Source of the DNA: Malacoraja senta
Taxonomy: Eukaryota
Assembly (NCBI GenBank): GCA_038087875.1
Contig: CM075994.1
Span: 8,928,001-8,992,000 of the forward strand
DNA: 64,000 bases
Reading direction: 5' to 3'
The notes below the pieces were generated by a model that had not been told where the DNA came from, made no database searches, and was given only the letters and a program-made list of their open reading frames with translations. Both the position numbers and the translations under genes were made by a program. Of the stretch, positions 17,331 to 52,500 are shown in pieces. Each line of letters starts with the position of its first letter. Within the stretch, counting starts at the first letter, position 1.

Positions 17331-18849
17331 CTCTGGATTGGATGGGACTTTTTACTTTGGAGCCGAGGAGGCTGAGGGGTGACCTCATTGAAGTGTACAA
17401 ATTCATGAGTGGTCGGGATAAAGTCGATGGTCAGTGTCTTAATAGCGCAGCGGTAGAGTTGCCGCCTTGCATCATTGCTGCGCTGGAGAACCCGGGTTCG
17501 ATCCCTACTACGGGTGCTGTCTGGACGGAGCTTGTACCTTCTCCCCGTGACCTGCGGGGCCTTTCTCCGAGATCCTCGGTTTCCTCCCACACCCCAAAGA
17601 CGTTCGGCCTTGTAGGTTATTTGGCTTCGTATAAATGGAGGATGAGGGGTGATCTTATAGAGGTGTACAAAATCATGAGAGGAATAGGAATGATGATGAA
17701 AGGTGTACAAAGTCAACACCTCACCCCTGAGCTCTCTGCTACCCTCATGCTGAACCAATCCACTCACTTTTAAAGTTCACACATTTTTTTATTTCTATAT
17801 GTGTGGGTGGGTGTGTGTAGTGTTTGTGTCTGTTTGCAGTCAGTGCTGGTCACACTGACCCAATCTTACCGGAAATCGCCCCCTGGTCTCACGCACTTCC
17901 CATTCTCTCTCAAACCCCCACATAGTACAGTAGAACAGTAGAGAAGAAGTGTCTCGACTGATTGTGGATGATCAGCCATGATCACATTGAATGGCGGTGC
18001 TGGCTCGAAGGGCCGAATGGCCAACTCCTGCACCCATTGTCTATTGTCTACTGACCCGAAACGTCGCCCATTCCTTCTCTCCAGAGATGCTGCCTCAACC
18101 GCTGAGTTACTCCAGCATTTCATGTCTACCTCCGATTTAAACCAGCATCTGCAGTTCTTTCTTACAGATAACAGTATTGGTGTTGGGAGGTCATGTTGCA
18201 GTTGTATAAGACGTTGGTGCGACCGCATTTAGAATACTGTGTTCAGTTCTGGCCACCATGTTATAGGAAAGATATTGTCCAGCTTGAAAGGGTTTAGTAA
18301 AGATTTACGAGGATGTTGCCAGGACTAGATGGTCTGAGCTATAGAGGAGGTTGAGTAGGCTGGGTCTCTATTCCCTGGGGCACAGGAGGATGAGGGGTGA
18401 TTTTATGGAGGTGTATAACATCATGAGAGGAATAGATCGAGTAGATCCACAGAATCCCTTACCCAGAGTAGGGGAATCGAGAAGCACAGGACATATGTAT
18501 AAGGTGAAGGGGCAAAGGAATCTGAGGGGCAACTTTTTCAAACACAGGGTGGTGGGTGTATTGAACAAGCTGCCTAAGGAGGTAGTTGAGGCTGGGACTA
18601 TCCCAACGTTTAAGAAACAGTTAGGTAAATGGGGAGCTGAGACATGCGTGAGGTGTTGCATTTTGTGAAGTCTAACATGGGCAAGACCTACATGGTGAAT
18701 GGTAGGGCTCTGGGGAGTGTTTGTCGATCAGAGGGATCTCGGAGTTCAGGTGCATAGTTCCTTGAAAGTGGCATCGCAGGTAGTTAGGGTGGTCAAAAAA
18801 GGCTTTCGGTACATTGGCCTTCATCAGTCAGCTGGGACCTGTGTTGGCC

Positions 18850-19400
18850 AGTGTGGGAAGTAGGGCCGAATGGCCTGTTTCCACACTGTATCACTCTATG
18901 ACTATGATAGAGAGTTTAGAGGGAAATTGGCCAAACACAGGCAGGTGGGACTAGTGTAGATGGGGCATGTTGGCCGGCGTGGGCAAGTTGGCTAAAGGGC
19001 CTGTTTCTACACTGAGTCACTGTATGACTCTATGAATCTATGATAGAGGGTTTACAGGGATATGGGCCAAACACAGGAAGGTGGACTAGTGTAGATGGGG
19101 CATGTTGGCCGGTGTGGGAAAGTTGGGCCAAAGGGCCTGTTTCCACACTGCATCATTCTATGACTCTGCGATAGAGGGTTTAGAGAGAAATGGGCCAAAC
19201 ACAGGCAGGTGGGACTGGTGTAGCTGGGACATGTTGGCCTGTGTGGGCAAGTTGGGCCCAACGGCCTGTTTCCACACTGTATCACTCTATGAATCTATGA
19301 TAGAGGGTTTAGATGGATATGGGCCAAACGCAGATAGGTGGGACTAGTGTAGCCGCCGGTATGGGCAAGTTCGGCTGAAGGGTCTGTTTCACGCTGCATC
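18850..19400. repeat. Paralogous tandem array in gene A (5 anchors)
   Basis: GGCCTGTTTCCACACTG-like anchors near 18871, 18998, 19134, 19262 and 19381. Confidence 0.85.
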
Positions 19401-19423
19401 ACTCGATGACTCTACGACCATAC

Positions 19424-19555
19424 CTTTAATGCTTCGCCGAAGTCGCAGAGACACAATAATTAATGCGATGACCAGTGCAGCCCCAACTCCAACAGATACT
19501 CCAATGAATATAATGTTAATGGGTTGGCACGAAGCAACAGTCTGAGAGGAGGCAC
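19424..19555 (-). CDS. Gene A exon 3: stalk and transmembrane (R)ASSQTVASCQPINIIFIGVSVGVGAALVIALIIVSLRLRRSIK
   Basis: TTTTAG acceptor and G|GTATGG donor; 132 nt, phase 1-1; about 23 hydrophobic residues followed by an RLRR stop-transfer; near-identical inverted copy at 48890-49021. Confidence 0.92.
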
Positions 19556-20459
19556 CTAAAATATAATCAAACAAACATCAGTCTTCCCGCAAATGTTTAG
19601 TTCACATTAGTATATTGTCACGTGTACCGAGTGAAAAGCTTTAGTTGCGTGCTAACCAGTCAGCAGTAAGACAACACATGATTACAATCGAGCCATTTAC
19701 AGTGTAGAGTTACATGATAGGGGAATAACGTTTAGTACAAGGCAAAGCCTTCAAGCCGGAAGTCTGCACAGAGTTCACAAGGTTCCCATTCAATCAAATA
19801 TTTTATAGACAATAGACAATAGGTGCAGGAGGAGGCCATTCGACCCTTCCAGCCAGCACCGCCATTCAATGTGATCATGGCTGATCATCCACAATCAGTA
19901 CCCCGTTCCTGCCTTCTCCCCATATCCCCTGACTCCGCTATCTTTAAGAGCCCCATCTAGCTCTCTCTTGAAAGTATCCAGAGAACCGGCCTCCACCGAG
20001 GCAGAGAAGTAAGATTTGATTCAATGGTGGACTGTCAGTTTGGAAGCTTTACATTTCACAACAGTGCTTCATATCATTATGTCAACGGTCCAGATATGTG
20101 GCCGCGGTAGAGTTGCAGCCTCACAGCGCCAGAGACCCGGGTTCGATCCTGACTACGGGCGCTGTCTGTACGGAGTTTGTACGTTCTCCCTGTGACCTGC
20201 GTGGGTTTCCTCCGGGTGCTCCGGTTTCCTCCCACATTCCAAAGTGTTTGTAGGTTAATTGGCTTCGGTTCAATGGTAAATACCCCGAGTGTGTTTAGGA
20301 CTGGACTTGTGTACGGGATGATTGCTGGTCAGGCGGACTCGCTGTATCTCTAAAGTGTGGGAGATTAATGAGGCCAGTATTATAACAGTTGGACAGTTTT
20401 GAGGGATATGGGGCAAACGCGGAAAATGGCACTCGCTTTGAATCGGTCGGCATGTAGAA

Positions 20460-21092
20460 GTTGGGTCATAACAAGGGGAGTTGAGTATAGGAGCAAAGAG
20501 GTCCTTCTGCAGTTGTACAGGGCCCTAGTGAGACCACGCCTGGAGCATTGTGTACAGTTTTGGTCCCCTAAATTTGAGGAAGGACATTCTTGCTATTGAG
20601 GGAGTGCAGCGTAGGTTCACCAGGTTAATTCCCGGGATGGCGGGACTGTCATATGCTGAGAGAATGGAGCGGCTGGGCTTGTACACTCTGGAGTTTAGAA
20701 GGATGAGAGGTGATCTTATTGAAACATATAAGATTATTAAGGGTTTGGACACGCTAGATAGAGGCAGGAAACATGTTCCCGATGTTGGGGGTGTCCAGAA
20801 CCAGGGGCCACACAGTGTAAGAATAAGGGGTAAGCAATTTAGAACGGAGACGAGAAAACACTTTTTCTCACAGAGAGTTGTGAGTCTGTGGAATTCTCCG
20901 CCTCAGAGGGCGGTGGAGGCCGGTTTTCTGGATACTTTCAAGAGAGAGCTAGATAGGGCTCTTAAAGATAGCGGAGTCAGGGGATATGAGGAGAAGGCAG
21001 GAACGGGGTACTAATTGGGGATGATCAGCCATGATCACATTGAATGGCGGTGCTGGCTCGAAGGTCCAAAGGGCCTACTCCTGCACCAATTG
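20460..21092 (+). mobile_element. CR1/HER1-like 3' end in gene A intron 2
   Basis: ORF 20550-21014. Confidence 0.85.
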
Positions 21093-21394
21093 NNNNNNNN
21101 NNNNNNNNNNNNNNNNNNNNNNNNNNNNNNNNNNNNNNNNNNNNNNNNNNNNNNNNNNNNNNNNNNNNNNNNNNNNNNNNNNNNNNNNNNNNNNNNNNNN
21201 NNNNNNNNNNNNNNNNNNNNNNNNNNNNNNNNNNNNNNNNNNNNNNNNNNNNNNNNNNNNNNNNNNNNNNNNNNNNNNNNNNNNNNNNNNNNNNNNNNNN
21301 NNNNNNNNNNNNNNNNNNNNNNNNNNNNNNNNNNNNNNNNNNNNNNNNNNNNNNNNNNNNNNNNNNNNCGTGCAGCATTGAGAGAAAGGCTTAC

Positions 21395-21715
21395 GCGTTA
21401 CGGTCACTTTGGTTCCTTTGCTCTTCACATTGGTTCCCAAGGTCTCCACTTTGCAGTAATAGTTCCCAGAATCGCACTCGGTGAGTTTCGTGATGCTCAG
21501 CGATGCCACCTGCATTTTGTTAAGGGTTTGGTGCCCCACTCTCACTCTGTTGAGGTACATCGGCGCGCTCTGTGAAATCACCCGCTCATCTTTATACCAA
21601 GTGAAGGTCATGCCTCCTGCAATATCGGCGGTACAGTTCATAACCAGCACCTCGCCTTCAACCAGTCTCGCCGTATCTGGTGTCAGCTGAACCTGGCCAT
21701 TTAGTGATCGCGCCC
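21395..21715 (-). CDS. Gene A exon 2: Ig V-type (VJ) domain ARSLNGQVQLTPDTARLVEGEVLVMNC...FTWYKD...TECDSGNYYCKVETLGTNVKSKGTKVTVT
   Basis: Pyrimidine tract plus AAACAG acceptor and C|GTAAG donor; 321 nt, phase 1-1; canonical B-strand Cys, C-strand Trp, DxGxYxC and xGTxVxV G strand. Confidence 0.95.
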
Positions 21716-21784
21716 CTGTTTAGTAAGAAGCGAGAGAGAGTAATAGATCGGGTAGATGCACAGAGTCTCTTGCCCAGAGTAGGT

Positions 21785-23560
21785 CAATAGACAATAGACA
21801 ACAGACAACAGGTGCAGGAGTAGGCCATTCGGCCCTTCGAGCCTGCGCCGCCATTCAATGTGATCATGGCTGATCATCCCCAATCAGTACCCCGTTCCTG
21901 CCTTCTCCCCATATCCCCCCGACTCCGCTATCTTTAAGAGTCCTATCTAGCTCTCTCTTGAAAGTATCCAGAGAACCGGCCCCCACCGCCCTCTGAGGCA
22001 GAGAATTCCACAGACTCACAACTGTCTGTGAGAAAAAGTGTTTCTTCGTCTCCGTTCTAAATGGCCGACCCTTATTTCTTAAACTGTGGACCCTGGCTCT
22101 GGACTCATCCAATATCGGGAACATGTTTCCTGCCTCTAGCGTGTCCAAACCCCTAATAAACTTATATATTTCAAAAATATACCCTCTCATCTTTCTAAAT
22201 TACAGAGTATACAACCCCAGCTGCTCCATTCTCTCAGCATATGACAGTCCCGCCATCCCGGGAATTACCTGGTAAACCTACGCTGCACTCCCTCAATGGC
22301 AAGAATGTCCTTCCTCAAATTAGGAGACCAAAACTGCACACAATACTCCAGGTGTGGTATCACCAGGACCCTGTAAAACCAAAGGACATAGGTTGAAGGT
22401 GAAGGGGAAAAGATGAGATATTACAGTTCTTGGTTCTTGGTTTCCTGGTCATCCAAAAATATTCCAAATGGAATTTAAACTGGAGGTGGCGGAGGGTGGA
22501 CAAGCAAAAAAGGGTTATTTTTTCTCCAAGAAGAGCTACCTTAAATTTAGTTGCGCCTGGTTGGGTAACTATGGTAGGGTGAAGACTATTCCATGCTTTA
22601 ATTGTGTGGGGGAAGAATGAATTGCTGTACACATCTGTCTTGGTAGCTGTTATCTCAATTTGGATCGAATGCCCTCGTCTGCTGCTAATAGACAATAGAC
22701 AATAGACAATGGGTGCAGGAGTAGGCCATTCGGCTTTCCATAGAAACATAGAAACATAATAATATGTGCAGGAGGACGCCATCCGGCCCTTCGAGCCAGT
22801 ATCGCCATTCATTGGGGACCATCATGGCTGATCGTCCCCAATCAATGACCCGTGCTTGCCTTCTCCCCATATCCCTTCATCCCACTAGCCCCTAGAGCTC
22901 TATCTAACTCTCTCTTAAATCCATCCAGTGACTTGGCCTCCACTGCCCTCTGTGGCAGGGAATTCCACAAATTCACAACTCTCTGGGTGAAAACGTTTTT
23001 TCTCACCTCAGTCTTAAATGGCCTCCCCTTTATTCTAAGACTGTGTGTGGCCCCCTGGTTCTGGACTCGCCCAACATTGGGAACATTTTCCTGGATCTAG
23101 CTTGTCCAGTCCTTTTATAATTTTATATGTTTCTATAAGATCCCCCCTCATCCTTCTAAACTCCAGTGAATACAAGCCTAGTCTTTTCAATCTTTCCTCA
23201 TATGACAGTCCCGCCATCCCAGGGATCAATCTCGTGAACCTACGCTGCACTGCCTCAATCACAAGGATGTCCTTCCTCAAATTAGGAGACCAAAACTGGA
23301 CACAATACTCCAGATGTGGTTTTCGAGCCAGCAGCGCCATTCAATGTGATCATGGGTGATCATCCCCAATCAGTACCCCGTTCCTGCCATCTCCCCATAT
23401 CCCCCGACTCCGCTATCTTTAAGAGCCCTATCTAGCTCTCTCTTGAAAGTATCCAGGGAACCGGCCTCCACCGCCCTCTGAGGCAGAGAATTTCACAGAC
23501 TCACAACCCTCTGTGTGAAAAAGTGTTTCCTCGTCTCCGTTCTAAATGGCTTACTCCTTA
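21785..23560 (-). mobile_element. Cluster of CR1 3' fragments plus an older LINE tail (SFFPHTIKAWNSL) in gene A intron 1
   Basis: ORFs 21864-22190, 22360-22812 and 23035-23340. Confidence 0.75.
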
Positions 23561-25175
23561 TTCTTAAACTATATTCTTAAAGGTTGGGGTTCGGTGTAGG
23601 TTTGGTAATCTATGTCGAGCTGACCATTTAACATTTTGTAAAAACAGGTCACACGTTGAGCATTGGGTCTGTCTTGGAGAGGGTTCCACCCCGACAAGTG
23701 AATTCAGAAGTTTGGCAACACTCGCTTCTCTCTCAAAGGTATTAGTAAAACATCGTTGTATAAGACGTTGGTGAGGCCAACAATAAGAGTATTGTGTTGT
23801 ACTGGGCACCACGTAATAGGAAAGATATTGTCAAGCTGGAAAGGGAACAGAGAAGATTTACGAGGATGTTGCCAGGACTAGAGGGTGTGAGCTACCGGGA
23901 GAGGCTGAGCGGGCTGGGACTCTATTTCTTGGAGCGCAGGAGGATGTGGGGTGAACTTATAGAGATGCATAAAATCGTGAGAGGAATAGATCGGGTAGAC
24001 GCACAGAGCTTTACCCGGTGTAGGGAAATTGAGGACCAGAGGACATAGGTTTTAGGTGAAGGGGAAAGATTTAATAGGAATCTGAGGGGAAACCTGTTCA
24101 CACAGAGGGTGGTGGGTGTATGGAACGAGCTGCCGGAGGAGGTAGTTGAGGCTGGGACTATCCCAACAGTTAGACAGGTACATGGGTAGGGCAGGTTTGG
24201 AAGGATATAGACACAACGTGGGCAGGTGTGACTAGTGTAGCTGGGACACGTTGGCCGCTGCGGGTAAGTTGGGCCCGAGGGCCTGTTTCCACGCTGTATC
24301 ACTCTATGACTCTATATGACTCCTATACCACGCTGTCCTTGCTTCCATTTTAGTTTATTGGCCCCAGAACATGAAGCAAAGACCAGTGATGTGCATCTCT
24401 GGAGAAAAGGAATAGGTAACGTTTCGGGTCGAGACCCTTCTTCAGACTGAGAATCGCGGGAAAGGGAAACTAGAGACATAGCGGATGATGCAGAGAGATA
24501 TACGGGAGGGGTGGGGGCAGGGGTGAAGTGGGGGGGGGGGGGGAGAACGAGCAAACGACATCAACACGGCAGAGTTAATCTTATGGGCGAGAATAAGGGG
24601 TAAGCCATTTAGAACGGAGATGAGGGAACACTTTTTCACCCAGAAAGTGGTGAGTCTGTGGAATTCTCTGCCTCAGAGGGCGGTGGAGGCCGGTTGTCTG
24701 GATGCTTTCAAGAGAGAGCTAGATAGGGCTCTTAAAAATAGCGGAGTCAGGGGATATGGGGAGAAGGCAGGAACGGGGTACTGATTGGGGATGATCAGCC
24801 ATGATCACATTGAATGGCGGTGCCAGCTCGAAGGGCCGAATGGCCTACTCCTGCACCTATTGTGTATTGTCTATTGTCTATATGTAACTTTGCAATGAAC
24901 GTTATGACATTCACTTTAAGAAACAACTGCAGATGCTGGAAAAATCGAAGGTGGACAAAAATGCTGGAGTAACTCAGCGGGTGAGGCAGCATCAATGCAG
25001 CGAAGGAATTGGTGACGTTTCGGGTCGGGACCCTTCATCAGACGAGGGGTCTCTTCTTCTGAGGAAAGGTCTCGACCCGAAACGTCACCTATTCCTTCGC
25101 TCTATAGATGCTGCCTCACCCGCTGAGTTTCTCCAGCATTTTTGTCTACCTTTTATGACATTCAGTGTGTCTTAC

Positions 25176-25230
25176 CTCGTAACGCGAGGCACCACAGAAC
25201 GATGAACAGGGCGGCGGAGCGTAGAGTCAT
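25176..25230 (-). CDS. Gene A exon 1: signal peptide MTLRSAALFIVLWCLALR(G)
   Basis: CCTGCC-ATG start context; 55 nt ending phase 1 at G|GTAAG; hydrophobic leader; splices in frame to the V exon; inverted homologue at 36396-36450. Confidence 0.88.
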
Positions 25231-25859
25231 GGCAGGTTGGTATTCAACGTCCAACGGGTATGAGCGGTCAAGAAAACCGCTGCTGAGATCTGGGACTGAG
25301 AGCAGAGCGAATGAGGAAAGTCACCAGGCATGTACTGCCCTCATCACAATCTAACCACCGCGTAGACTCTGCGATGCACAAAACCGGATGCGAGGTGGGC
25401 CAAATGCATTTCGCCCACAGAGTTGCAGGAAGGAACTGCAGATAGACACGACATGCTGGAGTAACGCAGCGGGACAGGCAGCATCTCTCCGGAGATGGAA
25501 TGGGCGGCTAAACTCCAGCCCGCCTAAACCTGGTTCCTTCTGCCAAACACTTTAACTCCCCCTCCCATTCCCACACCGACCTTTCTGTCCTGGGCCTCCT
25601 TCATTGCCAGAGTGAGGCCCAGCGCACATTGGGGGAACAGCACCTCATATTTCGCTTGGGTAGTTTACACCCCGGCGGTATGAACATTGACTTCTCCAAT
25701 TTCAGGTAGTCCTTGCTTTCCTTCTCTCTCCATCCCCTCCCCTTCCCACTTCTCCCACTAGTTTTACCGTCTCCGACTACATTTTATCTCTATACCGCCC
25801 ACTCCCCTGACATCAATCTGAGGAAGGGTCTCGGCCCGAAACGTCACAGTTTCCAGAGA

Positions 25860-26570
25860 ACCGGCCTCCACCGCCCTCTGAGGCAGAGAATTCCACAGAC
25901 TCACAACTCTCTGTGAGAAAAAGTGTTTCCTCATCCCCGCTCTAAATGGCTTACCCCTTATTATTAAACTGTGGCCCCTGGTTCTGGACTCCCCCAACAG
26001 CGGGAACATGTTTCCTGCCTCTAGCGTGTCCAAACCCTTAATAATCTTATATGTTTCAATAAGATACCCTCTCATCCTTCTAAACTCCAGAATGCACAAG
26101 CCCAGCCGCTCCATTCTCTCAGCATATGACAGTCCCGCCATCCCGGGAATTAACCTGGTGAACTACGCTGCACTCCCTCCAATAGCAAGAATGTCCTTCC
26201 ACAAATAGGGGACCAAAACTGAACACAATACTCCAGGTGTGGTCTCACTAGGGCCCTGTACAACTGCAGAAGGACCTCTTTGCCCCTATACTCAACTCCT
26301 CTTGTTATGAAGGCCAACATGGCATTCGCTTTCTTCACTGCCTGCTGCACCTGCATGCTTACTTTCAATGACTGACGAACAAGGACCCCCAGATCCCGTT
26401 GTACACCCCCCTTTCCCAATTTAACGCAATTTAGATAGTAATCTGCCTTCCTGTTTTGCTACCAAAGTGGATAACCTCACATTTATCCACATTAAACTGC
26501 ATCTGCCATGCATCTGCCCACTCCCCAACCTGTCCAAGTCACCCTGCATCCTCATAGCATCCTCCTCACA
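25860..26570 (-). mobile_element. CR1 3' fragment
   Basis: ORFs 25764-26141, 26150-26419 and 26421-26621. Confidence 0.8.
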
Positions 26571-27684
26571 AAATGTACTGATACAAGAAAAAGTTTGGAT
26601 GAATATCTTACTGATGAACAAGGACGAATGTTGGGTGTCGGGAAAGGGGTGTGGGTCGGGAGTTAAGGATAGTGTGTCATTCCTTAATCACAGGGGACAC
26701 ACCCTACATGGAAGCCAACGAAATGCAGACGCTGAAGAGTAAAAATAATCTAAAACAGTGCTGTTTCGACATTCTTGTTGCTTCTGCAGTCGAGCGGAAT
26801 GAGCGAGATTGAATCACGAGGACTTGCTTGTTGGCTCCAAGCTCAGCGGCCGCTCGCTGTGGAGCCAGCTCGATTTTCGCCAACCACAGGTCTGAACTGC
26901 TCCACACTTCAATGGCCAGAAACCATCACACTTATCACCGATCAAGTGTTTTTCCGACGAACGATAAACAACTTACTGGTCCAATCTTATTGGTGGTTCT
27001 GCATCTGGTCAGTTGAAATCTGATAACCTTCTGGGAGGCAATAAACACAGTGGGCAGAAATCTCTCTCTATTCTATTTTACTCCCCNNNNNNNNNNNNNN
27101 NNNNNNNNNNNNNNNNNNNNNNNNNNNNNNNNNNNNNNNNNNNNNNNNNNNNNNNNNNNNNNNNNNNNNNNNNNNNNNNNNNNNNNNNNNNNNNNNNNNN
27201 NNNNNNNNNNNNNNNNNNNNNNNNNNNNNNNNNNNNNNNNNNNNNNNNNNNNNNNNNNNNTCTCTCGCTCTCTCCCCCTCTCTCCCCTCTCCCCCTCTCC
27301 CTCTCCCCCTCTCTTCNNNNNNNNNNNNNNNNNNNNNNNNNNNNNNNNNNNNNNNNNNNNNNNNNNNNNNNNNNNNNNNNNNNNNNNNNNNNNNNNNNNN
27401 NNNNNNNNNNNNNNNNNNNNNNNNNNNNNNNNNNNNNNNNNNNNNNNNNNNNCCACTCTGTCTGTCCGTCTGTCTCTCTCTGTGTCTTTCTTTCTCTTCT
27501 CCCTCCCTTCCTTCCTCCCTCTCACTTCTTCCACCCTCTCTCGCCCCCTCGCCCCTCTCTCTCCCGCTCGCCCCTCCTCTCTCCTATGTCAGTATGTTAG
27601 GCTGGTGTGTGGGTATGTGTGTGTCCGTATGCGCTTGTATGAGCGTGTTTAGTTCATATGCAGTGTGTGTAGTTTGCGTGTCAG

Positions 27685-27686
<2 letters not shown>

Positions 27687-27732
<46 letters not shown>

Positions 27733-27860
27733 TGTGTGTGTGTGAGTGTGTGTGTGTGTGAGAGAGAGAGAGAGATGTAGAGAGAGACAGGCAGACAGAG
27801 GGAGAGAGGGATAGACAGAGGGAAGGAAAGAGAGAGAGAGAGAGAGGGAGAGAGAGAGAC
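27687..27860. repeat. (TG)n/(GA)n compound microsatellite
   Basis: Direct reading; CT-rich tracts flank the nearby gaps. Confidence 0.9.
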
Positions 27861-39176: not shown

Positions 39177-40566
39177 AAGATTAACTCTGCCGTGTTGAGG
39201 TAGTTTGCTCGTCCCCCCCCCCCACTTCACCCCTGCCCCCACCCCCTCCCGTATATCTCTCTGCATCATCCTCTATGTCTCTAGTTTCCCTTTCCCGCGA
39301 TTCTCAGTCTGAAGAAGGGTCTCGACCCGAAACGTCACCTATTCCTTTTCTCCAGAGATGCACATCATTGGTCTTTGCTTCATGTTCTGGGGCCAATAAA
39401 CTAAAATGGAAGCAAGGACAGCGTGGTATAGGAGTCATCTAGAGTCATAGAGTGATACAGCGTGGAAACAGGGCCCTCGGGCCCAACTTGCCCGCACCGG
39501 CCAACGTGTCCCAGCTACACTAGTCCCACCTGCCCACGTTGTGTCCATATCCTTCCAAACCTGTCCTATCCTTGTACCTGTCTAACTGTTTCTTACACGT
39601 TGGGATAGTCCCAGCCTCAACTACCTACTCTGGCAGCTCGTTCCATATGCCCATCACCCTCTGTGTGTAAAAGTCACCCCTCGGATTCCTATTAAATCTT
39701 TTTCCCTTCACCTGAAACCTATGTCCCCTGGTCCTCGATTCCCCTACCCCGGGTAAAGCTCTGTGCGTTTACTCAATCTATTCCTCTCATGATTTTATGC
39801 ATCTCTATAAGATCTCCCCTCATCCTCCTGCGCTCCAAGGAATAGTTCCAGCCCGCTCAACCTCTCCCTATAGCTCACACCCTCTAGTCCTGGCAACATC
39901 CTCGTAAATCATCTCTGTTCCCTTTCCAGCTTGACAATATCTTTCCTATTACGTGGTGCCCAGTACAACACAATACTCTTATAGAGGCATAAACATAGAA
40001 TTCTCCTATTTCCGGTAGCCCTTGCTGTCTCCTCCCTTCTCAGCTCTCCCTCAGCCCTCGGGCTCCTCCTCTTCCTTTTTCATTTCCTCTCCCCCCCCCA
40101 CCTTCCATCAGTCTGAAGAAGGGTTGCCTATTTCCTTCGCTCCATAGATGCTGCCTCACCCGCTGAGTTTCTCCAGCACTTTTGTCCACCTTCGATTTTC
40201 CAGCATCTGTAGTTCCTTCTTAAACACAATACTCTTACTGTTGGCCTCACCAACGTCTTATCCAACGATTTGTTACTAATATCTATGAGAGGGAAGCGAG
40301 TGTTGCCAAACTTCTGAATTCACGTGTCGGGGTGGAACCCTCTCCAAGACAGACCCAATGCTCAACGTGTGACCTGTTTTTACAAAATGTTAAATGGTCA
40401 GCTCGACACAGATTACCAAACCTACACCGAACCCCAACCTTTAAGAATAAGGAGTAGGCCATTTAGAACGGAGACGAGGAAACAATTTTTCACACAGAGA
40501 GTTGTGAGTCTGTGGAATTCTATCCTCAGAGGGCGGTGGAGGCCGGTTCTCTGGATACTTTCAAGT

Positions 40567-40739
40567 CAGGAAGTTAGCCAAGTTCTCAGGAAACTCATCC
40601 TCTCCCAAGGCTTATGTTTACAGAAGCCTGAACCTTCTCAGGAAGTACATCCCCTCTCACCGTTGTGAATGGTGTTCTACTTGGCACATAACAGGAAACA
40701 GCTTGAACGGCAGTTTGAAAGCTGGCCTCCAATTTCCTG
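40567..40739. promoter_or_regulatory. Cluster of five CAGGAA ETS-type cores (candidate intronic enhancer of gene B)
   Basis: CAGGAAGT at 40567 and 40639, CAGGAAAC at 40587 and 40692, TTTCCTG at 40733, all in unique sequence. Confidence 0.4.
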
Positions 40740-41489
40740 ATTCCCACATTTCTGCAAACTTCACTTCAGCTTATTTCAGCACCCAGAACAAGCTGGGTTA
40801 TACTCAGGCTATACGCAAGCTAATATTTTACTTAATCCATTCTAATTATAAAATATTTCATTATAAACTAGGATATTACCATATGGCCTCCTCCTGCGCC
40901 TATTTCCTATGTTTCTATGTTTCTATGAAAAATCCGAATGGCCTACTCCTGCACCCATTGTGTATTGTCTATTGTCTATTAGCAGCAGACGAGGGCATTT
41001 GATCCAATTTGAGATACCAGCTACGAAGACAGATATGTACAGCAATTCATTCTTCCCCCGCACAATTAAAGCATGGAATAGTCTTCACCCTACCATAGTT
41101 ACTCAACCAGACGCAACTAAATTTAAGGTAGCTCTGCTTGGAGAAAAAATAACCCATTTTTGCTTAAGTCCACCCTCCGCCACCTCCAGTTTAAATTCCA
41201 TTTGGAATATTTTTGGAGGACCAGGAAACCAAGAACCAAGAACTGCAATATGTCCTCTTTTCCCTTCATCTTCAACCTATGTCCTTTGGTTTTACAGGGC
41301 CCTAGTGAGACCACACCTGGAGTACTGTGTGCAGTTTTGGTCTCCTAATTTGAGGAAGGACATTCTTGCCATTGAGGGAGTGCAGCGTAGGTTTACAAGG
41401 TTAATTCCCGGGATGGCGGGACTGTCATATGCTGAGAGAATGGAGCGGCTGGGCTTGTATACTCTGGAGTTTAGAAGGATGAGAGGATA

Positions 41490-44101
41490 CCACTAAGGGG
41501 CAGAAAACGCTGGTGGGTGTTGTGTACAGGCCACCTAACAGTAGTAGTGAAGTTGGAGATGGTATCAAACAGGAACTTAGAAATGCGTGCAACAAAGGCA
41601 AAACAGTTATAATGGGTGACTTCAATCTACATATAGATTGGGTGAATCAAATTGGCAGGGGTGCTGAGGAAGAGAATTTCTTGGAATGTATGCGGGATAG
41701 TTATCTAAATCAACATGTAGAGGAACCAACGAGAGAGCAGGCTATTTTAGACTGGGTATTGAGTAATGAGGAAGGGTTAGTTAGCAGTCTTGTTGTGCGT
41801 GGCCCCTTGGGCAAGAGTGACCATAATATGGTTGAGTTCTTCATTAGGATGGAGAGTGACATCGTTAATTCAGAAACAAGGGTCCTGAACTTAAAGAAAG
41901 GTAACTTTGAGGGTATGAAACCGTGAATTGGCCAAGATAGACTGGCAATTGATTCTTTAAGGGTTGATGGTGGATATGCAATGTAAGGCATTTAAAGACT
42001 GCATGGATGAACTACAAAAATTGTTCATCCCAGTTTGGCAAAAGAATAAATCAGGGAAGGTAGTGCATCCGTGGATAACAAGGGAAATCAGGGATGGTAT
42101 CAAAGCGAAGGATGATGCGTACAAATTAGCCAGAAAAAGCAGCATACCGGAGGACTGGGAGAAATTCAGAGACCAGCAGAGGAGGACAAAGGGCTTAATT
42201 AGGAAAGGAAAAATAGATTATGAAAGAAAACTGGCAGGGAACATAAAAACTGACTGCAAAAGTTGTTATAGATATGTAAAAAGAAAGAGATTAGTTAAAA
42301 CAAATGTAGGTCCCTTGCAGTCCAGAAACAGGTGAGTTGATCATGGGGAACAAGGATATGGCGGACCAATTGAATAACTACTTTGGTTCCGTCTTCACTG
42401 AGGAAGACATAAATAATCTGCCGGAAATAGCAGGGGACCGCGGGTCAAAGGAGTTGGAGGAATTGAGTGAAATCCAGGTTAGTCGGGAAGTGGTTTTGGG
42501 TAAATTGAATGGATTAAAGGCCGATAAATCCCCAGGGCCAGATAGGCTGCATCCCAGAGTACTTAAGGAAGTAGCTCCAGAAATAGTGGATGCATTAGTA
42601 ATAATCTTTCAAAACTCTTTAGATTCTGGAGTAGTTCCTGAGGATTGGCGGGTAGCAAACGTAACCCACTTTTTAAGAAGGGAGGGAGAGAGAAAACGGG
42701 GAATTACAGACCAGTTAGTCTAACATCGGTAGTGGGGAAACTGCTAGAGTCAGTTATTAAAGATGGGATAGCAGCACATTTGGAAAGTGGTGAAATTATT
42801 GGACAAAGTCAGCATGGATTTACGAAAGGTAAATCATGTCTGACGAATTTTATAGAATTTTCGAGGATGTAACTAGTAGCGTGGGTAGGGGAGAATCAGT
42901 GGATGTGGTGTATCTGGACTTCCAGAAGGCTTTCGACAAGGTCCCACATAAGAGATTAGTATACAAACGTAAAGCACATGGCATAGGGGGTTCAGTATTG
43001 ATGTGCATAGAGAACTGGCTGGCAAACAGGAAGCAAAGAGTAGGAGTAAACGGGTCCTTTTCACAATGGCAGGCAGTGACTAGTGGGGTACCGCAAGGCT
43101 CAGTGCTGGGACCCCAGCTATTTACAATATATATTAATGACCTGGATGAGGGAATTGAAGGCAATATCTCCAAGTTTGCGGATGACACTAAGCTGGGGGG
43201 CAGTGTTTAGCTGTGAGGAGGATGCTAGGAGACTGCAAGGTGACTTGGAAGGGCTGGGTGAGTGGGCAAATGTTTGGCAGATGCAGTATAATGTGGATAA
43301 ATGTGAGGTTATCCATTTTGGTGGCAAAAACAGGAAAGCAGACTATTATCTAAATGGTGGCCGATTAGGAAAAGGGAGATGCAGCGAGACCTGGGTGTCA
43401 TGGTACACCAGTCATTGAAAGTAGGCATGCAGGTGCAGCAGGCAGTGAAGAAAGCGAATGGTATGTTAGCTTTCAAATCAAAAGGATTTGAGTACAGGAG
43501 CAGGGAGGTTCTACTGCAGTTGTACAGGGTCTTGGTGAGACCACACCTGGAGTATTGCGTACAGTTTTGGTCTCCAAATCTGAGGAAGGACATTATTGCC
43601 ATAGAGGGAGTGCAGAGAAGGTTCACCAGACTGAATGTCAGGACTGTCTTATGAAGAAAGACTGGATAGACTTGGTTTATACTCTCTAGAATTTAGGAGA
43701 TTGAGAGGGGATCTTATAGAAACTTACAAAATTCTTAAGGGGTTGGACAGGCTAGATGCAGGAAGATTGCTCCCGATGTTGGGGAAGTCCAGGACAAGGG
43801 GTCACAGCTTAAGGATAAGGGGGAAATCCTTTAAAACCGAGATGAGAAGAACTTTTTTCACACAGAGAGTGGTAAATCTCTGGAACTCTCTGCCACAGAG
43901 GGTAGTCGAGGCCAGTTCATTGGCTATATTTAAGAGGGAGTTAGATGTGGCCCTTGTGGCTAAAGGGATCAGAGGGTATGGAGAGAAGGCAGGTACGGGA
44001 TACTGAGTTGGATGATCAGCCATGATCATATTGAATGGCGGTGCAGGCTCGAAGGGCCGAATGGCCTACTCCTGCACCTAATTTCTATGTTTCTATGTTT
44101 C
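41490..44101 (+). mobile_element. CR1-clade LINE (HER1-like), long 5'-truncated copy with endonuclease and RT, frameshifted
   Basis: YRPPN and MGDFN (APE), QGSVLGP and FADD (RT); 3' tail (TTTCTATG)n; nested in an older CR1 tail at GGA^TATC. Confidence 0.92.
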
Positions 44102-44566
44102 TATCTTATTGAAGCATATAAGATTATTAAGGGTTTGGACACGCTAGAGGCAGGAAACATTTTCCCGATGTTGGGGGAGCCCAGAACAAGTGGCCACAGT
44201 TTAAGAATAAGGGGTAAGCCATTTAGAAGGGAGACGATGAAACACTTTTTCTCCCAGAGAGTTGTGATTCTGTGGAATTATCTGCCTCAGTGGGCGGTGG
44301 AGGCCGGTGCTCTGTATACTTTCAAGAGAGAGTTAGATATGGCTCTTATAGATAGCGGAGTCAGGGGATACGGGGAGAAGGCAGGAACGGGGTACTGATT
44401 GGGGATGATCAGCCATGATCACATTGAATGGCGGCGCAGGCTCGAAGGGCCGAATGGCCTACTCCTGCACCTGTTGTCTGTTGTCTATTGTCTATTGACC
44501 TACTCTGGGCAAGAGACTCTGTGCATCTACCCGATCTATTACTCTCTCTCGCTTCTTACTAAACAG

Positions 44567-44887
44567 GGGCGCGATCACTAAATGGCCAGGTTCAGCTGAC
44601 GCCAGATACGGCGAGACTGGTTGAAGGCGAGGTGCTGGTTATGAACTGTACCGCCGATATTGCAGGAGGCATGACCTTCACTTGGTATAAAGATGAGCGG
44701 GTGATTTCACAGAGCGCGCCGATGTACATCAACAGAGTGAGAGTGGGGCACCAAACCCTTAACAAAAAGCAGGTGGCATCGCTGAGCATCACCAAACTCA
44801 CCGAGTGCGATTCTGGGACCTATTACTGCAAAGTGGAGACCTTGGGAACCAATGTGAAGAGCAAAGGAACCAAAGTGACCGTAACGC
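44567..44887 (+). CDS. Gene B exon 2: Ig V-type (VJ) domain
   Basis: TACTCTCTCTCGCTTCTTACTAAACAG acceptor and C|GTAAG donor; open frame; 5 nt differences from gene A exon 2. Confidence 0.95.
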
Positions 44888-45519
44888 GTAAGCCTTTCTC
44901 TCAATGCNNNNNNNNNNNNNNNNNNNNNNNNNNNNNNNNNNNNNNNNNNNNNNNNNNNNNNNNNNNNNNNNNNNNNNNNNNNNNNNNNNNNNNNNNNNNN
45001 NNNNNNNNNNNNNNNNNNNNNNNNNNNNNNNNNNNNNNNNNNNNNNNNNNNNNNNNNNNNNNNNNNNNNNNNNNNNNNNNNNNNNNNNNNNNNNNNNNNN
45101 NNNNNNNNNNNNNNNNNNNNNNNNNNNNNNNNNNNNNNNNNNNNNNNNNNNNNNNNNNNNNNNNNNNNNNNNNNNNNNNNNNNNNNNNNNNNNNNNNNNN
45201 NNNNNNNNNNNNNNNNNNNNNNNNNNNNNNNNNNNNNNNNNNNNNNNNNNNNNNNNNNNNNNNNNNNNNNNNNNNNNNNNNNNNNNNNNNNNNNNNNNNN
45301 NNNNNNNNNNNNNNNNNNNNNNNNNNNNNNNNNNNNNNNNNNNNNNNNNNNNNNNNNNNNNNNNNNNNNNNNNNNNNNNNNNNNNTAGACAATAGACAAT
45401 AGGTGCAGGAGTCGGCCCTTTGGACCTTCGAGCCAGCACCGCCATTCAATGTGATCATGGCTGATCATCGCCAATCAGTACACCGTTCCTGCCTTCTCCC
45501 CATATCCCCTGACACCGCT

Positions 45520-48355
45520 GTAGAAACATAGAAACCTAGATAATAAGTGCAGGTGTAGGCCATTCGGCCCTTCGAGCCTGCACCGCCATTCAATATGATC
45601 ATGGCTGATCATCCAACTCAGTATCCTGTACCTGCTTTCTCTCCATACCCCCCGATCCCTTTAGCCACAAGGGCCACATCTAACTCCCTCTTAAATATAG
45701 CCAATGAACTGGCCTCAACTACCCTCTGTGGCAGAGAATTCCACAGATTCACATCTCTCTGTGTAAAAAATGAGTTTCTCATCTGGGTCCTAAAAGACTT
45801 CCCCCTTATCCTTAAACTGTGACCCCCTGTTCTGGACTTTCCCCACATCGGGAATAATCTTCCTGCATCTAGCCTGTCCAAGCCCTTAAGAATTTTGGAA
45901 GTTTCTATAAAATCCCCCCTCATTCTTCTAAATTCTAGCGAGTATAAGCCGAGTCTATCCAGTCTTTCTTCATATGAAAGTCCTGCCATCCCAGGAATCA
46001 GTCTGGTGAAACTTCTCTGTACTCCCTCTATGGCAGGAATGTCTTTCCTCAGATTAGGAGACCAAAACTGTACGCAATACTCCAGGTGTGGTCTCACCAA
46101 GACCCTGTACAACTTCAGTAGACCCTCCCTGCTCTTATACTCAAATCGTTTTGCTATGAATGCTAACATACCATTCGCTTTCTTCACTGCCTGCTGCACC
46201 TGCATGCCTACTTTCAATGACTGGTGTACCATGACACCCAGGTCTCGCTGCATCTCCCCTTTTCCTAATCGGCCACCATTCAGATAATAGTCTACTTTCC
46301 TGTTTTTGCCACCAAAGTGGATAACCTCACATTTATCCACATTATACTGCATCTGCCATGCATTTGCCCACTCACCCAACCTATCCAAGTCACCTTGCAG
46401 CCTCCTAGCATCCTCCTCACAGCTAACACTGCCCCCCAGCTTCGTGTCATCCTCAAACTTGGAGATGTTGCATTCAATTCCCTCGTCCAGACCATTAATA
46501 TATATTGTAAATAGGTGGGGTCCCAGCACTGAGCCTTGCGGTACCCACTAGTCACTGCCTGCCATTCTGAAAAGGACCCGTTTACTCCTACTCTTTGCTT
46601 CCTGTCTGCCAGCCAGTTCTCTATCCACATCAATACTGAACCCCCAATACAGTGTGCTTTAAGTTTGCATACTAATCTCTTATGTGGGACCTTGTCGTAA
46701 GACTTCTGAAAGTCCAGATATAACACATCCACTGGTTCTCCCTTATCCACTCTACTCGTTACATCCTCGAAAAATTCTATAAGATTCGTCAGATATGATT
46801 TGCCTTTCATAAATCCATGCTGACTTTGTCCAATGAATTCACCACTTTCCAAATGTGCTGCTATCCCATCTTTAATAACTGACTCTTGCATGTTCCCCAC
46901 TACCGACGTTAGACTAACTGCTCTGTAATTCCCCGTTTTCTCTCTCCCTCCCTTTTTGAAAAGCGGGGTTACATTAGCTACCCTCCAATCCTCAGGAACT
47001 GCTCCAGAATCTAAAGAGTTTTGAAAAATTATCACTAATGCATCCACTATTTCTGGGGCTACTTCCTTAAGTACTCTGGGATGCAACCTATCTGGCCCTG
47101 GGGATTTATCGGCCTTTAATCCGTTCAATTTACCTAACACCACTTCCCGGCTAACCTGGATTTCACTCAGTTCCTCCATCTCATTTGACACACGGTCCCC
47201 TGCTATTTCCGGCAGATTATTTATGTCTTCCTTAGTGAAGACATAACCAAAGTAGTTATTCAATTGGTCTGCCATGTCCTTGTTCCCCATGATCAATTCG
47301 CCTGACCTACATTTGTTTTAATTAATATTTTTCTCTTCACATATCTATAAAAACATTTGCAGTCAGTTTTTATGTTCCCTGCCAGTTTTCTTTCATAATC
47401 TATTTTCCCTTTCCTAATTAAGCCCTTTGTCCTCCTCTGCTGGACTCCGAATTTCTCCCAGTCCCCTGGTAGGCTGCTTTTTCTGGCTAATTTGTATGCT
47501 TCATCTTTTGTTTTGATACTATCCCTGATTTCCCTTGTTATCCACGGATGCACTACCTTCCCTGATTTATTCTTTTGCCAAACTGGGATGAACAATTGTT
47601 GTAGGTCATCCATGCAGTCTTTAAATGCCTTCCATTGCATATCCACCGTCAACCCTTAAAGAATCAATTGCCAGTGTATCTTGGCCAATTCACGTTTCAT
47701 ACCCTCAAAGTTACCTTTCTTTAAGTTCAGGACCCTTGTTTCTGAATTAACAATGTCACTCTCCATCCTAATGAAGAACTCAACCATATTATGGTCACTC
47801 TTTCCCAAGGGGCCACGCACAACAAGATTGCTAACTAACCCTTCATCATTACTCAATACGCAGTCTAGAATAGCCTGCTCTCTCGTTGGTTCCTCTACAT
47901 GTTGGTTTAGAAAACTATCCCGCATACATTCCAAGAAATCCTCTTCCTCAGCACCCCTGCCAATTTGATTCACCCAATCTATATGTAGATTGAAGTCACC
48001 CATTATAACTGTTTTACCTTTGTTGCACGCATTTCTAATTTCCTGTTTGATGCCTTCCCCAACTCCACTTCTACTACTGTTAGGTGGCCTGTACACAATT
48101 CCCACTAGCGTTTTCTGCCCCTTAGTGCTTCGCAGCTCTACCCATATTGATTCCACATCCTCCAAGCTAATGTCCTTCCTTTCTATTGCATTAATCTCCT
48201 CTCTAACCAGCTCCTTTTCCTTTCTGTCTATCCTTCCTGAATATTGAATATCCCTGGATGTTCAGCTCCCAGCCTTGGTCACCCTGGAGCCATGTCTCCG
48301 TGATCCCAACTATATCATATTCATTAATAACTGTCTGCACATTCAACTCATCCAC
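45520..48355 (-). mobile_element. CR1-clade LINE, long 5'-truncated copy, antisense, frameshifted
   Basis: Same APE and RT motifs on the minus strand (ORFs 47656-48165, 46292-47296, 45618-46529). Confidence 0.92.
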
Positions 48356-48889
48356 CATAATGATATGAAGCACTGTTGTGAAATGTAAAGCTTCCAAACT
48401 GACAGTCCACCATTGAATCAAATCCTAATTCTCTGCCTCAGAGGGCGGTGGAGGCCGGTTCTCTGGATACTTTCAAGAGAGAGCTAAATAAGGCTCTTAA
48501 AGATAGCGGAGTCAGGGGATATGGACAGAAGGCAGGAACGGGGTACTGATTGGGGATGATCAGCCATGATCACATTGAATGGCGGTGCTGGCTCGAAGGG
48601 CCGAATGGCCTCCTCCTGCACCTTTTGTCTATTGTCTATAAAATATTTGATTGAATGGGAACCTTGTGAACTCTGTGCAGACTTCCGGCTTGAAGGCTTT
48701 GCCTTGTGCTAAACGGTATTCCCCTATCATGTAACTCTACACTGTAAATGGCTCGATTGTAATCATGTGTTGTCTTACTGCTGACTGGTTAGCACGCAAC
48801 AAAAGCTTTTCACTCGGTACACGTGACAATATACTAATCTGAACTAAATATTTGCGGGAAGACTGATGTTTGTTTGATTAATATTTTAG

Positions 48890-49021
48890 GTGCCTCCTCT
48901 CAGACTGTTGCTTCGTGCCAACCCATTAACATTATATTCATTGGAATATCTGTTGGAGTAGGGGCTGCACTGGTGATCGCATTAATTATTGTGTCTCTGC
49001 GACTTCGGCGAAGCATTAAAG
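48890..49021 (+). CDS. Gene B exon 3: stalk and transmembrane; read-through into the intron gives GMVVE* (TGA 49036-49038)
   Basis: ATTTTAG acceptor and G|GTATGG donor; 3 nt differences from gene A exon 3. Confidence 0.9.
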
Positions 49022-49039
49022 GTATGGTCGTAGAGTGAT

Positions 49040-50110
49040 CGAGTGATGCAGCGTGGAAACAGGCCCTTCAGCCCAACTTGCCCATACCGGCAGCTACACT
49101 AGTCCCACCTATCTGCGTTTGGCCCATATCCATCTAAACCCTCCATCATAGATTAATAGAGTGATGCAGTGTGGAAACAGGCCCTTCAGCCCACCTTGCC
49201 CACACTGGCCAACATGCCCCAGCTACACTCGTCCCATCTGCCCACATTTGGCCCATATCCATCTAAACCCTCTATCATAGATTCATAGAGTGATACAGTG
49301 TGGAAACAGGCCCTTCGGCCCAACTTTCCCACACCGGCCAACATGCCCCATCTACACTAGTCCCTCCTGTCCACGTTTGGCCCATATCCCTGTATACCCT
49401 CTATCATAGATTCAGAGAGTCATAGTGATGCAGGGTGGAAACAGGCCCTTCAGCCCAACTTGCCCACACCGGCCAAAATGCCCCATCCACACTAGTCCCA
49501 CCTGCCCGCGTTTGGCCCATATCCCTCTAAGCCCTCTATCATAGATTCATAGAGTCATAGAGTGATACAGTGTGGAAACAGGCCCTTCAGCCAAACTTGA
49601 CCACACTGGCCAAATTGCCCCATCTACACTAGTCCCACCTGCCTGTGTTTGGCCCATATCTCTCTAAACCCTCTAGCATAGAGTCATAGAATGATGCAGT
49701 GTGAAAACAGGCTCTTTGGCCCAACTTGCGCACACCGGCCAACATGCCCCATCTACACTAGTCCCACCTGCCCGGGTTTGGCCCATATCCCTATAAACCC
49801 TCTATCATAGATTTATAAAGTGATATAGTGTGGAAACAGGCCCTTCAGCCATACTTGCCCACATTGGCCAACATGTCCCAGCTCCACTAGTCGCACCTGC
49901 CTGCCTTTGGCCCGTATGCCTGTAAACCCTCTATCATAGATTCATAGAGTGATACAGTGTGGAAACCGGCCCTTCAGCCAACACTGGCCAACATGCCACA
50001 GCTACACTAGCCCTATCTGCCCACTTTTGGCCCATATCCCTCTAAACCGGCTATCATAATCATAGCGTGATGCAGTGTGGAAACAGGCCCTTCAGTCCTA
50101 CTTGCCACCA
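49040..50110. repeat. Tandem array of ~120-135 bp CR1-3'UTR-derived units (9 GGAAACAGGCCC anchors)
   Basis: Anchors near 49055, 49171, 49301, 49436, 49573, 49701, 49831, 49960 and 50077. Confidence 0.85.
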
Positions 50111-51729
50111 CTGGCCAACAGGTCCCAGCTGACTGATGAAGGCCAATGTACCGAAAGCCTTTTTGACCACCCTATCTACCTGCGATGCCACTTTCAGGGA
50201 ACTATGCACCTGAACTCGGAGATCCCTCTGATCTGCAACACTCCCCAGAGCCCTACCATTCACCATGAAGGTCTTGCCCATGTTAGACTTCTCAAAATGC
50301 AACACCTCACGCATGTCTCAGCTGTCCATTTACCTAACTGTTTCTTAAACGTTGGGATAGTCCCAGCCTCAACTACCTCCTTAGGCAGCTTGTTCCATAC
50401 ACCCACCACCCCCTGCGTGAAAAAGTTACCCCTCAGATTCCTTTCCCCCTTCACCTTAAACCTATGTCCTTTGCTTCTCGATTCCCCTACTCTGGGTAAG
50501 GGATTCTGTGGATCCACCTGATCTATTCCTCTCATGATTTTCTGGATCCGTCAAACTTACTGGAATGGCTTACCCCTGATTCTTAAACCGCCGTCCCTGG
50601 TTCTGGACTCCCCCAAACATCGGAAACACGATTCCTGCCTCTAGCGTGTCCAATCTCTTAATAATCTTATATGTTTCAATAAGATCCCTCTTGAAAGCAT
50701 CCAGAGAATCGGCCTCCACTGCCATCTGAGATACCAAATGGTGAACTACCAAATAGTGAAAGGCTTGGATCCAGTGGATGAGGAGAGGATGTTTCCACCA
50801 GTGGAAGAGCTTCGAACTAGAGGTCTCTCAGAATTAATTCCCTCAGAATTAAGGGACGTACCTTTAGGAAGGAGATGAGGATGAATTTCTTTAGTCAGAG
50901 GGTGGTGAATCTGTGGAATTCTTTGCCACAGAAGGCTGTGGGCCAAGTCAGTGGATATTTTTTAAGGCAGACGTTGGCAGATTCTTGATTAGTACGGGTG
51001 TCAGGGGTTATGGGGAGAAGGCAGGAGAATGGGGTTAGGAGGGAGAGATAGATCAGCCATGATTGAATGGCAGAGTAGACTTGATGGCCCGAATGGCCTG
51101 ATTCTGCTCCTATCACGTTTGACCTTATGACCTTATTGATTAAATTGCCAGCTCTGGAGGGTGTCTGAAGAAGGGTCTCGACCCGAAATGTTACCTTTTC
51201 TCCAGAGATGCTGCCCGTCCCGCTGAGTTACTCCAGCACTTTGTGTCTTTTTCCATCTATCGCTTGACAGGCTTTGTCCGCCCCCCCCCCCACCCAACAT
51301 CTCTTCCAGCTTGATTGAGGAGGAACTGCAGATGCTGGCTTAAACCGTAGCACAAAAGGCTGGAGTAGCTCAGCGGGACAGGCAGCATTTCTGGAGAGAA
51401 GGAATGGGTGTTGTTTCGGGTCGAGACCCTTCCCACCCCCACTCTGTAGCAGGGTCCTAACACGAAACTGTTTTTTTGCGTCTACCTATGTCCTGTTTCT
51501 GAGCTGTAAAGTCCTGTTCTGTTGACGCTGCAAACCAGATGCCTGCCTGGCTCTTTTGCAAACACTATTTTAGTTTTTTTGCTTGTTTGCGTTATAATCA
51601 GTTGCAGAACAGCTATTGGGAGAGGCGTGGGCTTGTTTCTCGAAGACCAGCTGCATGATGTGCAGTCCCCACTGGATTTCCTTGGTGTTTGTGTGTGCGT
51701 GTGTGTGTGTCCTGCCTTTTCTGTGTGTG

Positions 51730-52485: not shown

Positions 52486-52500
52486 TTCTGTTTTCTCTGG

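Follow-up and report, generated by a model that had tools for sequence, protein, structure and literature searches.

The subject of this work is a 64,000-nt stretch of the Malacoraja senta genome (GenBank assembly GCA_038087875.1, contig CM075994.1, positions 8,928,001 to 8,992,000 of the forward strand; hereafter the window, with coordinates counted from its first letter), in which two copies of an immunoglobulin (Ig) receptor gene lie head to head as assembled. Gene A is complete and runs on the minus strand from 25230 to 6343; copy B runs on the plus strand from 36396 and carries only the 5′ exons. In our assessment the locus is probably a DNA-level inverted partial duplication of an elasmobranch-specific and uncharacterised single-V-domain receptor gene, with A as the parental gene, B as the derived copy and gene conversion acting on the V exon.

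Gene A comprises seven exons with canonical splice sites throughout and a 705-nt open reading frame (ORF) encoding 234 amino acids. The protein starts with a leader, followed by a single V-set domain whose J-like strand is germline-joined, a short cysteine-bearing stalk, an uncharged transmembrane (TM) segment and a tail with a YMIM motif. Exon 1 (25176..25230, minus strand as for all exons of the gene) encodes the leader MTLRSAALFIVLWCLALR and ends in a phase 1 donor, GTAAG; exon 2 (21395..21715, phase 1-1) encodes the Ig V-set domain with its J-like G strand GTKVTVT, and is defined by its Pfam V-set and Ig_2 matches and its splice sites; exon 3 (19424..19555) encodes the stalk with its cysteine, the uncharged TM segment and the residues RLRRSIK. 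The four remaining exons lie outside the duplication and consist of a 19-nt micro-exon 4 (14261..14279), exon 5 (14060..14094; RQFLQYIAEKST), exon 6 (11327..11361; DYMIMDEEKKHK, with the YMxM motif) and exon 7 (6343..6450), which encodes a basic C-terminus and ends in the stop codon TAA at 6345-6343. Searches with tblastn align the tails of ray proteins to the minus strand at ~14100, 11350 and 6400, all on the A side and outside the duplication, with exon 5 matching the Pristis and Mobula tails and exon 7 the Mobula tail (E 2e-7). The regions of tail exons 5 and 6 are kept in Leucoraja, and the Pristis gene has the same exon layout as gene A. Because the phases of the TM exon and of the exon starting at 14094 do not fit each other, a phase-correcting exon was sought, and the micro-exon at 14279-14261 was found; it is the only candidate with a strong acceptor, a strong donor (GTAAGT) and the right phase, and the DCLGLQ that it encodes resembles the ACIALQ of rays. 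An exon of 19 nt is easily missed by gene predictors.

The duplication consists of two inverted arms around a spacer. Arm A (18418..26125, minus strand, 7.7 kb) is the duplicated part of the parental gene and holds exons 1-3, flanked by 0.9 kb of upstream sequence and 1 kb of intron 3; arm B (35494..50541, plus strand, 15.0 kb) is the derived inverted partial copy, enlarged by insertions of long interspersed nuclear elements (LINEs) and by tandem-repeat expansion; the spacer (26126..35493) has a written length of 9.4 kb, of which three gaps account for 510 N. Chaining of minus-strand self-BLAST matches links the arms through eight inverted, collinear blocks, from A 26125-18420 to B 35494-50538: A 26125-25165 with B 35494-36461, A 24876-24581 with B 37691-37981, A 24583-23783 with B 39176-39982, A 23798-23442 with B 40223-40565, A 22782-22183 with B 40883-41486, A 22181-21375 with B 44102-44907, A 20081-18844 with B 48356-49613, and A 19417-18420 with B 49547-50538. 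BLAST identity of the blocks is 86-95%, and global alignment of seven blocks yields a substitution identity of 95.2% over 4,443 sites (4,230 matches and 213 mismatches). Although dispersed repeats saturate the region, eight matched stretches occur exactly twice in the window, once per arm, so that the match between the arms cannot be put down to dispersed copies of transposable elements (TEs). Beyond 18418 and 50541 the alignment ends abruptly, and the only further matches between the two sides are to multi-copy TEs. The locus thus presents two collinear, reverse-complement arms that include non-repetitive sequence, as an inverted segmental duplication should.

The exons on the two arms mirror each other, with AG/GT splice sites and compatible phases throughout. 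Copy B consists of a leader exon (36396..36450, plus strand; MHLRSLALFIFLWCFAIR) with 10 nt differences from A, an intact V exon (44567..44887, plus strand) that differs from A at 5 of 321 nt and, through three non-synonymous changes, at 3 of 107 residues, and a TM exon (48890-49021, plus strand) with a predicted read-through of its donor to a TGA at 49036-49038, giving a feature of 48890..49038. All three exons and their splice sites are intact. Exons 4-7 of gene A have no counterpart on the B side, being single-copy in the window together with 100-nt flanks, and no protein-level match to them was found downstream of B. A reading made from the letters alone (the sequence-only reading) had described leader, V and TM exons mirrored between a minus-strand and a plus-strand copy, which the eight-block chain, the 95.2% identity and the splice sites bear out; its counts of 5 differences in the V exon and 10 in the leader are exact on the alignment, and the ATGs that it placed 11.2 kb apart, at 25230 and 36396, are separated by 11,166 nt, 510 of them N. 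Its description of the pair as two receptor paralogues holds insofar as there are two diverged copies, but these are not equivalent genes, B being a partial, tail-less 5′ copy. The 10 differences between the leader exons (36396-36450 and 25230-25176) amount to 18% of their 55 nt, about four times the arm average, with ~5 private changes in each copy relative to Leucoraja; core hydrophobicity and the GTAAG donor are kept in both.

The polarity and age of the duplication were established against a 25.5-kb gap-free locus of Leucoraja erinacea (L001; LOC129694204, uncharacterised), which reaches 10 kb upstream of its ATG. L001 is collinear with the window from 30495 to 9152, that is, with gene A and both of its flanks, past both ends of the duplication, and the 4.4 kb of the spacer next to A (26126-30495) correspond to L001 9111-1 as the orthologous upstream region. 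Arm B, in turn, matches only L001 9112-16551. Since Leucoraja is collinear with A and both flanks and B matches the duplicated unit alone, A is the parental gene and B the derived copy; LOC129694204 is the positional orthologue of gene A, and the ancestral duplicated unit measures ~7.4 kb. In the three-way comparison A and B agree against Leucoraja at 243 sites, with 80 A-specific and 70 B-specific changes, and the distance between A and B (dAB) is 0.046, as against ~0.095 from either copy to Leucoraja. These counts and distances identify A and B as sisters with equal branches, and place the duplication after the separation from the Leucoraja lineage, at about half the depth of that species split. 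A 560-nt segment shared by A and B and absent in Leucoraja was considered as a further clade marker and given little weight, because a deletion in Leucoraja explains it equally well. At one and the same point relative to Leucoraja (L001 ~11606), A (22735-23350, ~620 nt) and B (40566-40933, 320-370 nt) carry different and unrelated extra segments, which suggests an insertion hotspot or a replaced insertion.

Identity between A and B along the arms is a mosaic, ranging from 86 to 100%, and its most prominent feature is a tract over the V exon (B 44354..44907, A ~21928-21375) that comprises the exon and 213 nt of the upstream intron and runs up to a sequence gap. Within it, A and B differ at 7 of 547 sites (1.3%) and each differs from Leucoraja by 12.3%, a ratio of 0.10 where the overall value is 0.48 (Fisher P 8e-7). 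Identical runs reach 229 nt (P 0.003), and permutation puts a count of 5 differences in 547 sites at P<0.0005. A second near-identical tract (B 35858..36040) lies 350-540 nt upstream of the ATG, with an identical run of 183 nt (P 0.02) and, over 35861-36200, a dAB of 1.3% as against 8.8% to Leucoraja. Between species the V exon has accumulated 40 non-synonymous and 8 synonymous changes, a rate ratio (dN/dS) of ~1.55 that is not significantly above 1. As the tract includes intron together with a V exon that evolves fast between species, constraint cannot explain its near-identity; its pattern of substitutions reads instead as the signature of gene conversion, a process that clearly seems to act at this locus. 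The suggestion of the sequence-only reading that inverted arms permit gene conversion thereby gains direct statistical support at the V exon, from both the Fisher and the permutation test.

Much of the difference in length between the arms is made up of repeats. Intron 1 of B contains a LINE reverse-transcriptase fragment (37982..39175, plus strand) that is absent from A and Leucoraja and has a 3-nt duplication at its junction. A 5′-truncated LINE with endonuclease and reverse-transcriptase ORFs (41487..44101, plus strand, in sense orientation) is likewise specific to B and ends 465 nt upstream of its V exon; A carries the precise empty site at 22183/22181. A third B-specific LINE, in intron 2 (45521..48355, minus strand, antisense), belongs to the same family as the second and is associated with the loss from B of ~0.9 kb that is kept in A (20969-20082) and in Leucoraja. 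The TM exon is followed by a 129-nt tandem repeat, with 8 copies in B (49091..50130) and 3.9 in A (18842-19352), which is also found at L001 15446-16551. The two LINEs around the V exon of B are 91-96% identical and, being in opposite orientation, form a nested inverted repeat centred near the gap at 44908-45385. They were examined as a second DNA-level palindrome and rejected as such, since the right copy extends ~230 nt further 5′ than the left, as expected of independent insertions. A pair of this kind could promote inversion of the V exon that it brackets, or could have contributed to the assembly break.

The window holds six N runs, five of them within the duplication region, and all exons are free of gaps. 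Those in intron 2 occupy mirrored positions, starting 26 nt (A, 21093-21368) and 20 nt (B, 44908-45385) past the V-exon donor, and the same TE fragment follows both (A 21092-20970 aligned to B 45397-45519, 94% in self-BLAST). The flanks of both intron 2 gaps match the gap-free Leucoraja orthologue in order and orientation (on the A side, window 21369 corresponds to L001 13416 and 21048 to L001 13760), and the interval measures 343 nt in Leucoraja and 321 nt in A; a hidden exon is not expected there, as V is joined straight to TM in the mRNA model of Leucoraja. It is plausible that the near-identical repeat itself caused the assembly to break at the V tract on both arms. In the spacer, the gaps at 27087-27260 and 27317-27452 are bracketed by Leucoraja-collinear flanks, but the corresponding Leucoraja intervals are 1.4 and 3.3 kb, as compared with 0.25 and 0.14 kb here, so the written length of the spacer is unreliable. 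The gap of 200 N at 35288-35487 ends 6 nt before the start of arm B, so that the inner edge of this arm and the point where it meets the spacer are provisional, and the head-to-head orientation and distance of the arms depend on this one scaffold join. The position of the join and the unreliable spacer gaps speak for a possible mis-scaffolding, in which B is a genuine second copy placed at a wrong orientation or distance with respect to A, and may instead be in tandem, more distant or more widely spaced. Still, the contigs 35488-44907 and 45386-64000 are mutually collinear with A and with Leucoraja, which fixes their mutual order and orientation, the joins on the A side agree with Leucoraja, and scaffolders usually have linking evidence; we regard an error of this type as improbable, though it is the alternative that survives best.

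A more remote alternative is that the duplication predates the Leucoraja split and owes its young look to pervasive concerted evolution, in which case Leucoraja should have the same head-to-head pair. Conversion clearly acts at the locus, as this scenario needs, and three segments (35494-35860, the leader and 44103-44353) show a divergence between A and B equal to or greater than that to Leucoraja. In the diverged segments, however, A- and B-specific changes are equal in number (for example 18 and 16), where an old duplication with Leucoraja orthologous to A predicts an excess of B-specific changes; a set of 5.8 billion proteins contains only one Leucoraja protein of the family; and the introns outside the tracts are uniformly diverged, at ~4.5% between the arms as against 8.7% to Leucoraja. 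Taken together, these observations make an older origin quite unlikely.

That arm B is the alternative haplotype of A, inserted in reverse into the primary scaffold, is very unlikely indeed, for although assemblies are known to fail by placing inverted near-copies next to gaps, haplotypes of immune loci can diverge strongly and the equal branch lengths of A and B are what alleles would show, the copies are 4.6-4.8% diverged, with a mosaic of identity and four kb-scale indels (private LINEs of 1.2, 2.6 and 2.8 kb and a deletion of 0.9 kb), and the homology of B, which in a haplotig would continue, stops at 50541 inside an ungapped contig and gives way to sequence unrelated to intron 3 or the tail exons of gene A. 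Neither does the homology run to contig ends, nor are the differences of allelic magnitude. The earlier claim that these are diverged paralogous copies, and not one locus assembled twice, is upheld on the same grounds: the divergence, the copy-specific TEs, the outer junction of B inside a contig and the equal branches.

The preferred interpretation is therefore an inverted partial duplication of gene A with subsequent conversion of the V exon, for which we propose the following history. A segment of ~7.4 kb (exons 1-3 with 0.9 kb before them and 1 kb of intron 3) would have been copied in reverse upstream of gene A; copy B would then have gained three LINEs, a 0.9-kb deletion and extra 129-nt repeats; and the arms would have exchanged sequence by non-crossover gene conversion, which would have kept the V exon close to identical on both arms together with the intron upstream of it. 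Divergent transcription of A and B and the sharing of enhancers between them, put forward in the sequence-only reading, may follow from this arrangement.

Several observations weigh against this interpretation or parts of it. The proximity of arm B to the 200-N gap (6 nt) and of both V exons to gaps (20-26 nt) means that assembly or polishing could have affected the orientation, the spacing and the near-identity found where contigs end, and consensus mixing at contig ends is a conceivable source of the V-tract identity. The Leucoraja locus was inspected only to 10 kb upstream. In the segment just upstream of the V tract (44103-44353 and 22181-21930) the two arms diverge by 13.5%, a value above the distance of either one to Leucoraja (10%), which a simple model of duplication and conversion leaves unexplained; ectopic conversion from other TE copies is a possibility. 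Finally, the 6.6 kb of LINE sequence in the introns of B, with one sense-oriented element just upstream of the V exon, the fast-diverging leader and the missing tail may be signs that B is decaying. The TE-derived segment at 44103-44353 and 22181-21930 has ~18 private changes in A, ~16 in B and ~8 on the Leucoraja side.

What copy B encodes can be predicted within narrow limits. Its maximal and sole predictable product has 174 residues, consisting of leader, V domain and TM exon followed by GMVVE and a stop; the TM segment INIIFIGISVGVGAALVIALIIVSL contains no charged residue, the stop lies five codons after the TM exon, and no tail exons follow. If B is transcribed, read-through of its TM-exon donor would thus yield a membrane protein without a tail. 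In Leucoraja, the RefSeq model of the gene A orthologue ends by the same read-through, into the 129-nt repeat, and residues 116-209 of the Leucoraja protein (P0004) are contiguous on L001 15279-15560; a tail-less isoform is therefore at least annotated for this receptor family. In that RefSeq protein of 209 residues, the C-terminal 42 residues correspond to read-through of intron 3 and the 129-nt repeat, and the real tail exons lie downstream. The proteins of A and B in the window have no entries in protein collections, and searches of the whole window against Rfam gave no matches at the gathering threshold, with no ribozyme upstream of either TM exon. We lean slightly towards B being inert, a fragment whose intact look comes from its youth and from repeated conversion; that it is an expressed tail-less or decoy partner of A is a serious contender, to which we would give a little less than an even chance.

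The V domain is recognised by Pfam V-set (PF07686; 43.8 and 37.3 bits, cut-off 26) and Ig_2 (50.4 and 48.4 bits, cut-off 27), and its AlphaFold2 model is a nine-strand Ig sandwich with a mean confidence (pLDDT) of 89.5. An exhaustive HMMER search returned three single-domain relatives among many multi-Ig proteins, all uncharacterised, from Leucoraja erinacea (LOC129694204), Pristis pectinata (LOC127586087) and Cetorhinus maximus, to which a word-index search added Mobula. The family shares the signature NLTECDSGTYYC and a J-like GxGTKVxV strand. Like gene A, the Leucoraja, Pristis, Mobula and Cetorhinus relatives have a leader, a single VJ-type V domain, a stalk and a TM segment, and those from rays also have the same tail exons. 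In contrast to the window, only one copy is seen in Leucoraja and Pristis within 10 kb on either side of the gene, a reach that in Pristis is too short to exclude a copy at the A-B distance. Protein identity of the V domain to the Leucoraja orthologue (L001 13069-13389) is 63-68%, as against ~88% DNA identity in the flanks; the changes concentrate in predicted loops and outer strands, and the framework of Cys, Trp, LTECDSGTY and GTKV is kept.

Assignment of the V domain to a named receptor family was attempted and rejected, because no search discriminates among candidates, and nothing beyond V-set is assigned. Pfam returns generic Ig families only, sequence and profile matches in the PDB are to titin and DCC and then to light-chain, T-cell receptor alpha and VNAR V domains, and comparison of the AlphaFold2 model with the Swiss-Prot set of the AlphaFold database places neuregulin, ADGRA, CD8-beta, NKp30, PD-1 and CD79b at similar scores. 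UrIg and UrIg2 (PMC12227049) were discarded as relatives, being V-C1-C2-C3 proteins, unlike the V-TM receptor described here. With the CD28/ICOS/CTLA-4 family gene A shares its single V domain, the cysteine close to the membrane, the TM segment and a short tail bearing a YMxM-type motif, but it has seven exons in place of four and neither a MYPPPY nor a FDPPPF loop, its FG loop being KVETLGTNVKSKG; no CD28 family member ranks among the top matches by sequence or fold, and membership is not indicated.

These results have practical consequences for annotation, since the locus contains one complete gene and one 5′ partial copy, a distinction relevant to analyses of copy number and expression. With Leucoraja as outgroup, conversion between inverted arms can here be dated in an elasmobranch genome, in an uncharacterised and fast-evolving VJ-type receptor family. 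The locus also constitutes a concrete test case for assembly quality, with gaps that fall exactly at the converted tract on both arms. If B is expressed, it would show in a simple natural case how immune receptors come to have tail-less or decoy partners.

Among known systems, the ampliconic palindromes of primate Y chromosomes are likewise inverted around a unique spacer, and intrachromosomal conversion homogenises their arms and preserves their genes. In those palindromes the identity of the arms exceeds 99.9% over lengths of tens to hundreds of kb, whereas the A/B locus has 95% identity, arms of 7.7 and 15 kb and only short converted tracts.

The closest described analogue is the SIGLEC11 and SIGLEC16 pair of primate receptors. 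These genes lie head to head, ~9 kb apart, and a 5′ region of ~3 kb with the N-terminal Ig exons is kept similar by repeated, fragmented conversion while their signalling ends differ (PMC5701461). The A/B locus resembles them in its 9.4-kb spacer, its shared 5′ exons, the conversion tract over the V exon and the differing tails, and it shares with paired receptors in general the adjacent, near-identical ectodomain exons and their homogenisation by conversion. An opposite signalling device, in the form of a charged TM segment with an adaptor or a different tail, is absent from B: Siglec-16 ends in a complete 3′ part of its own and carries a charged residue for DAP12 in its TM segment, while copy B has the uncharged TM segment of A and no 3′ exons, and can therefore be at best a tail-less decoy and not an activating partner. 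The proteins are, moreover, unrelated beyond the Ig fold, and the copy here is young. It is conceivable, though unlikely, that the locus is an early paired receptor of cartilaginous fish, in which a YMIM-signalling A would face a decoy or dominant-negative, tail-less B, possibly heterodimerising through the stalk cysteine, with a shared promoter region and a V exon locked by conversion in an arms race between host and pathogen. Were this true, the route to a decoy by partial inverted duplication known from primate Siglecs would also have been taken in elasmobranchs. As a type, an inverted partial duplicate with conversion is already known; the lineage and the gene family in which it is found here are new.

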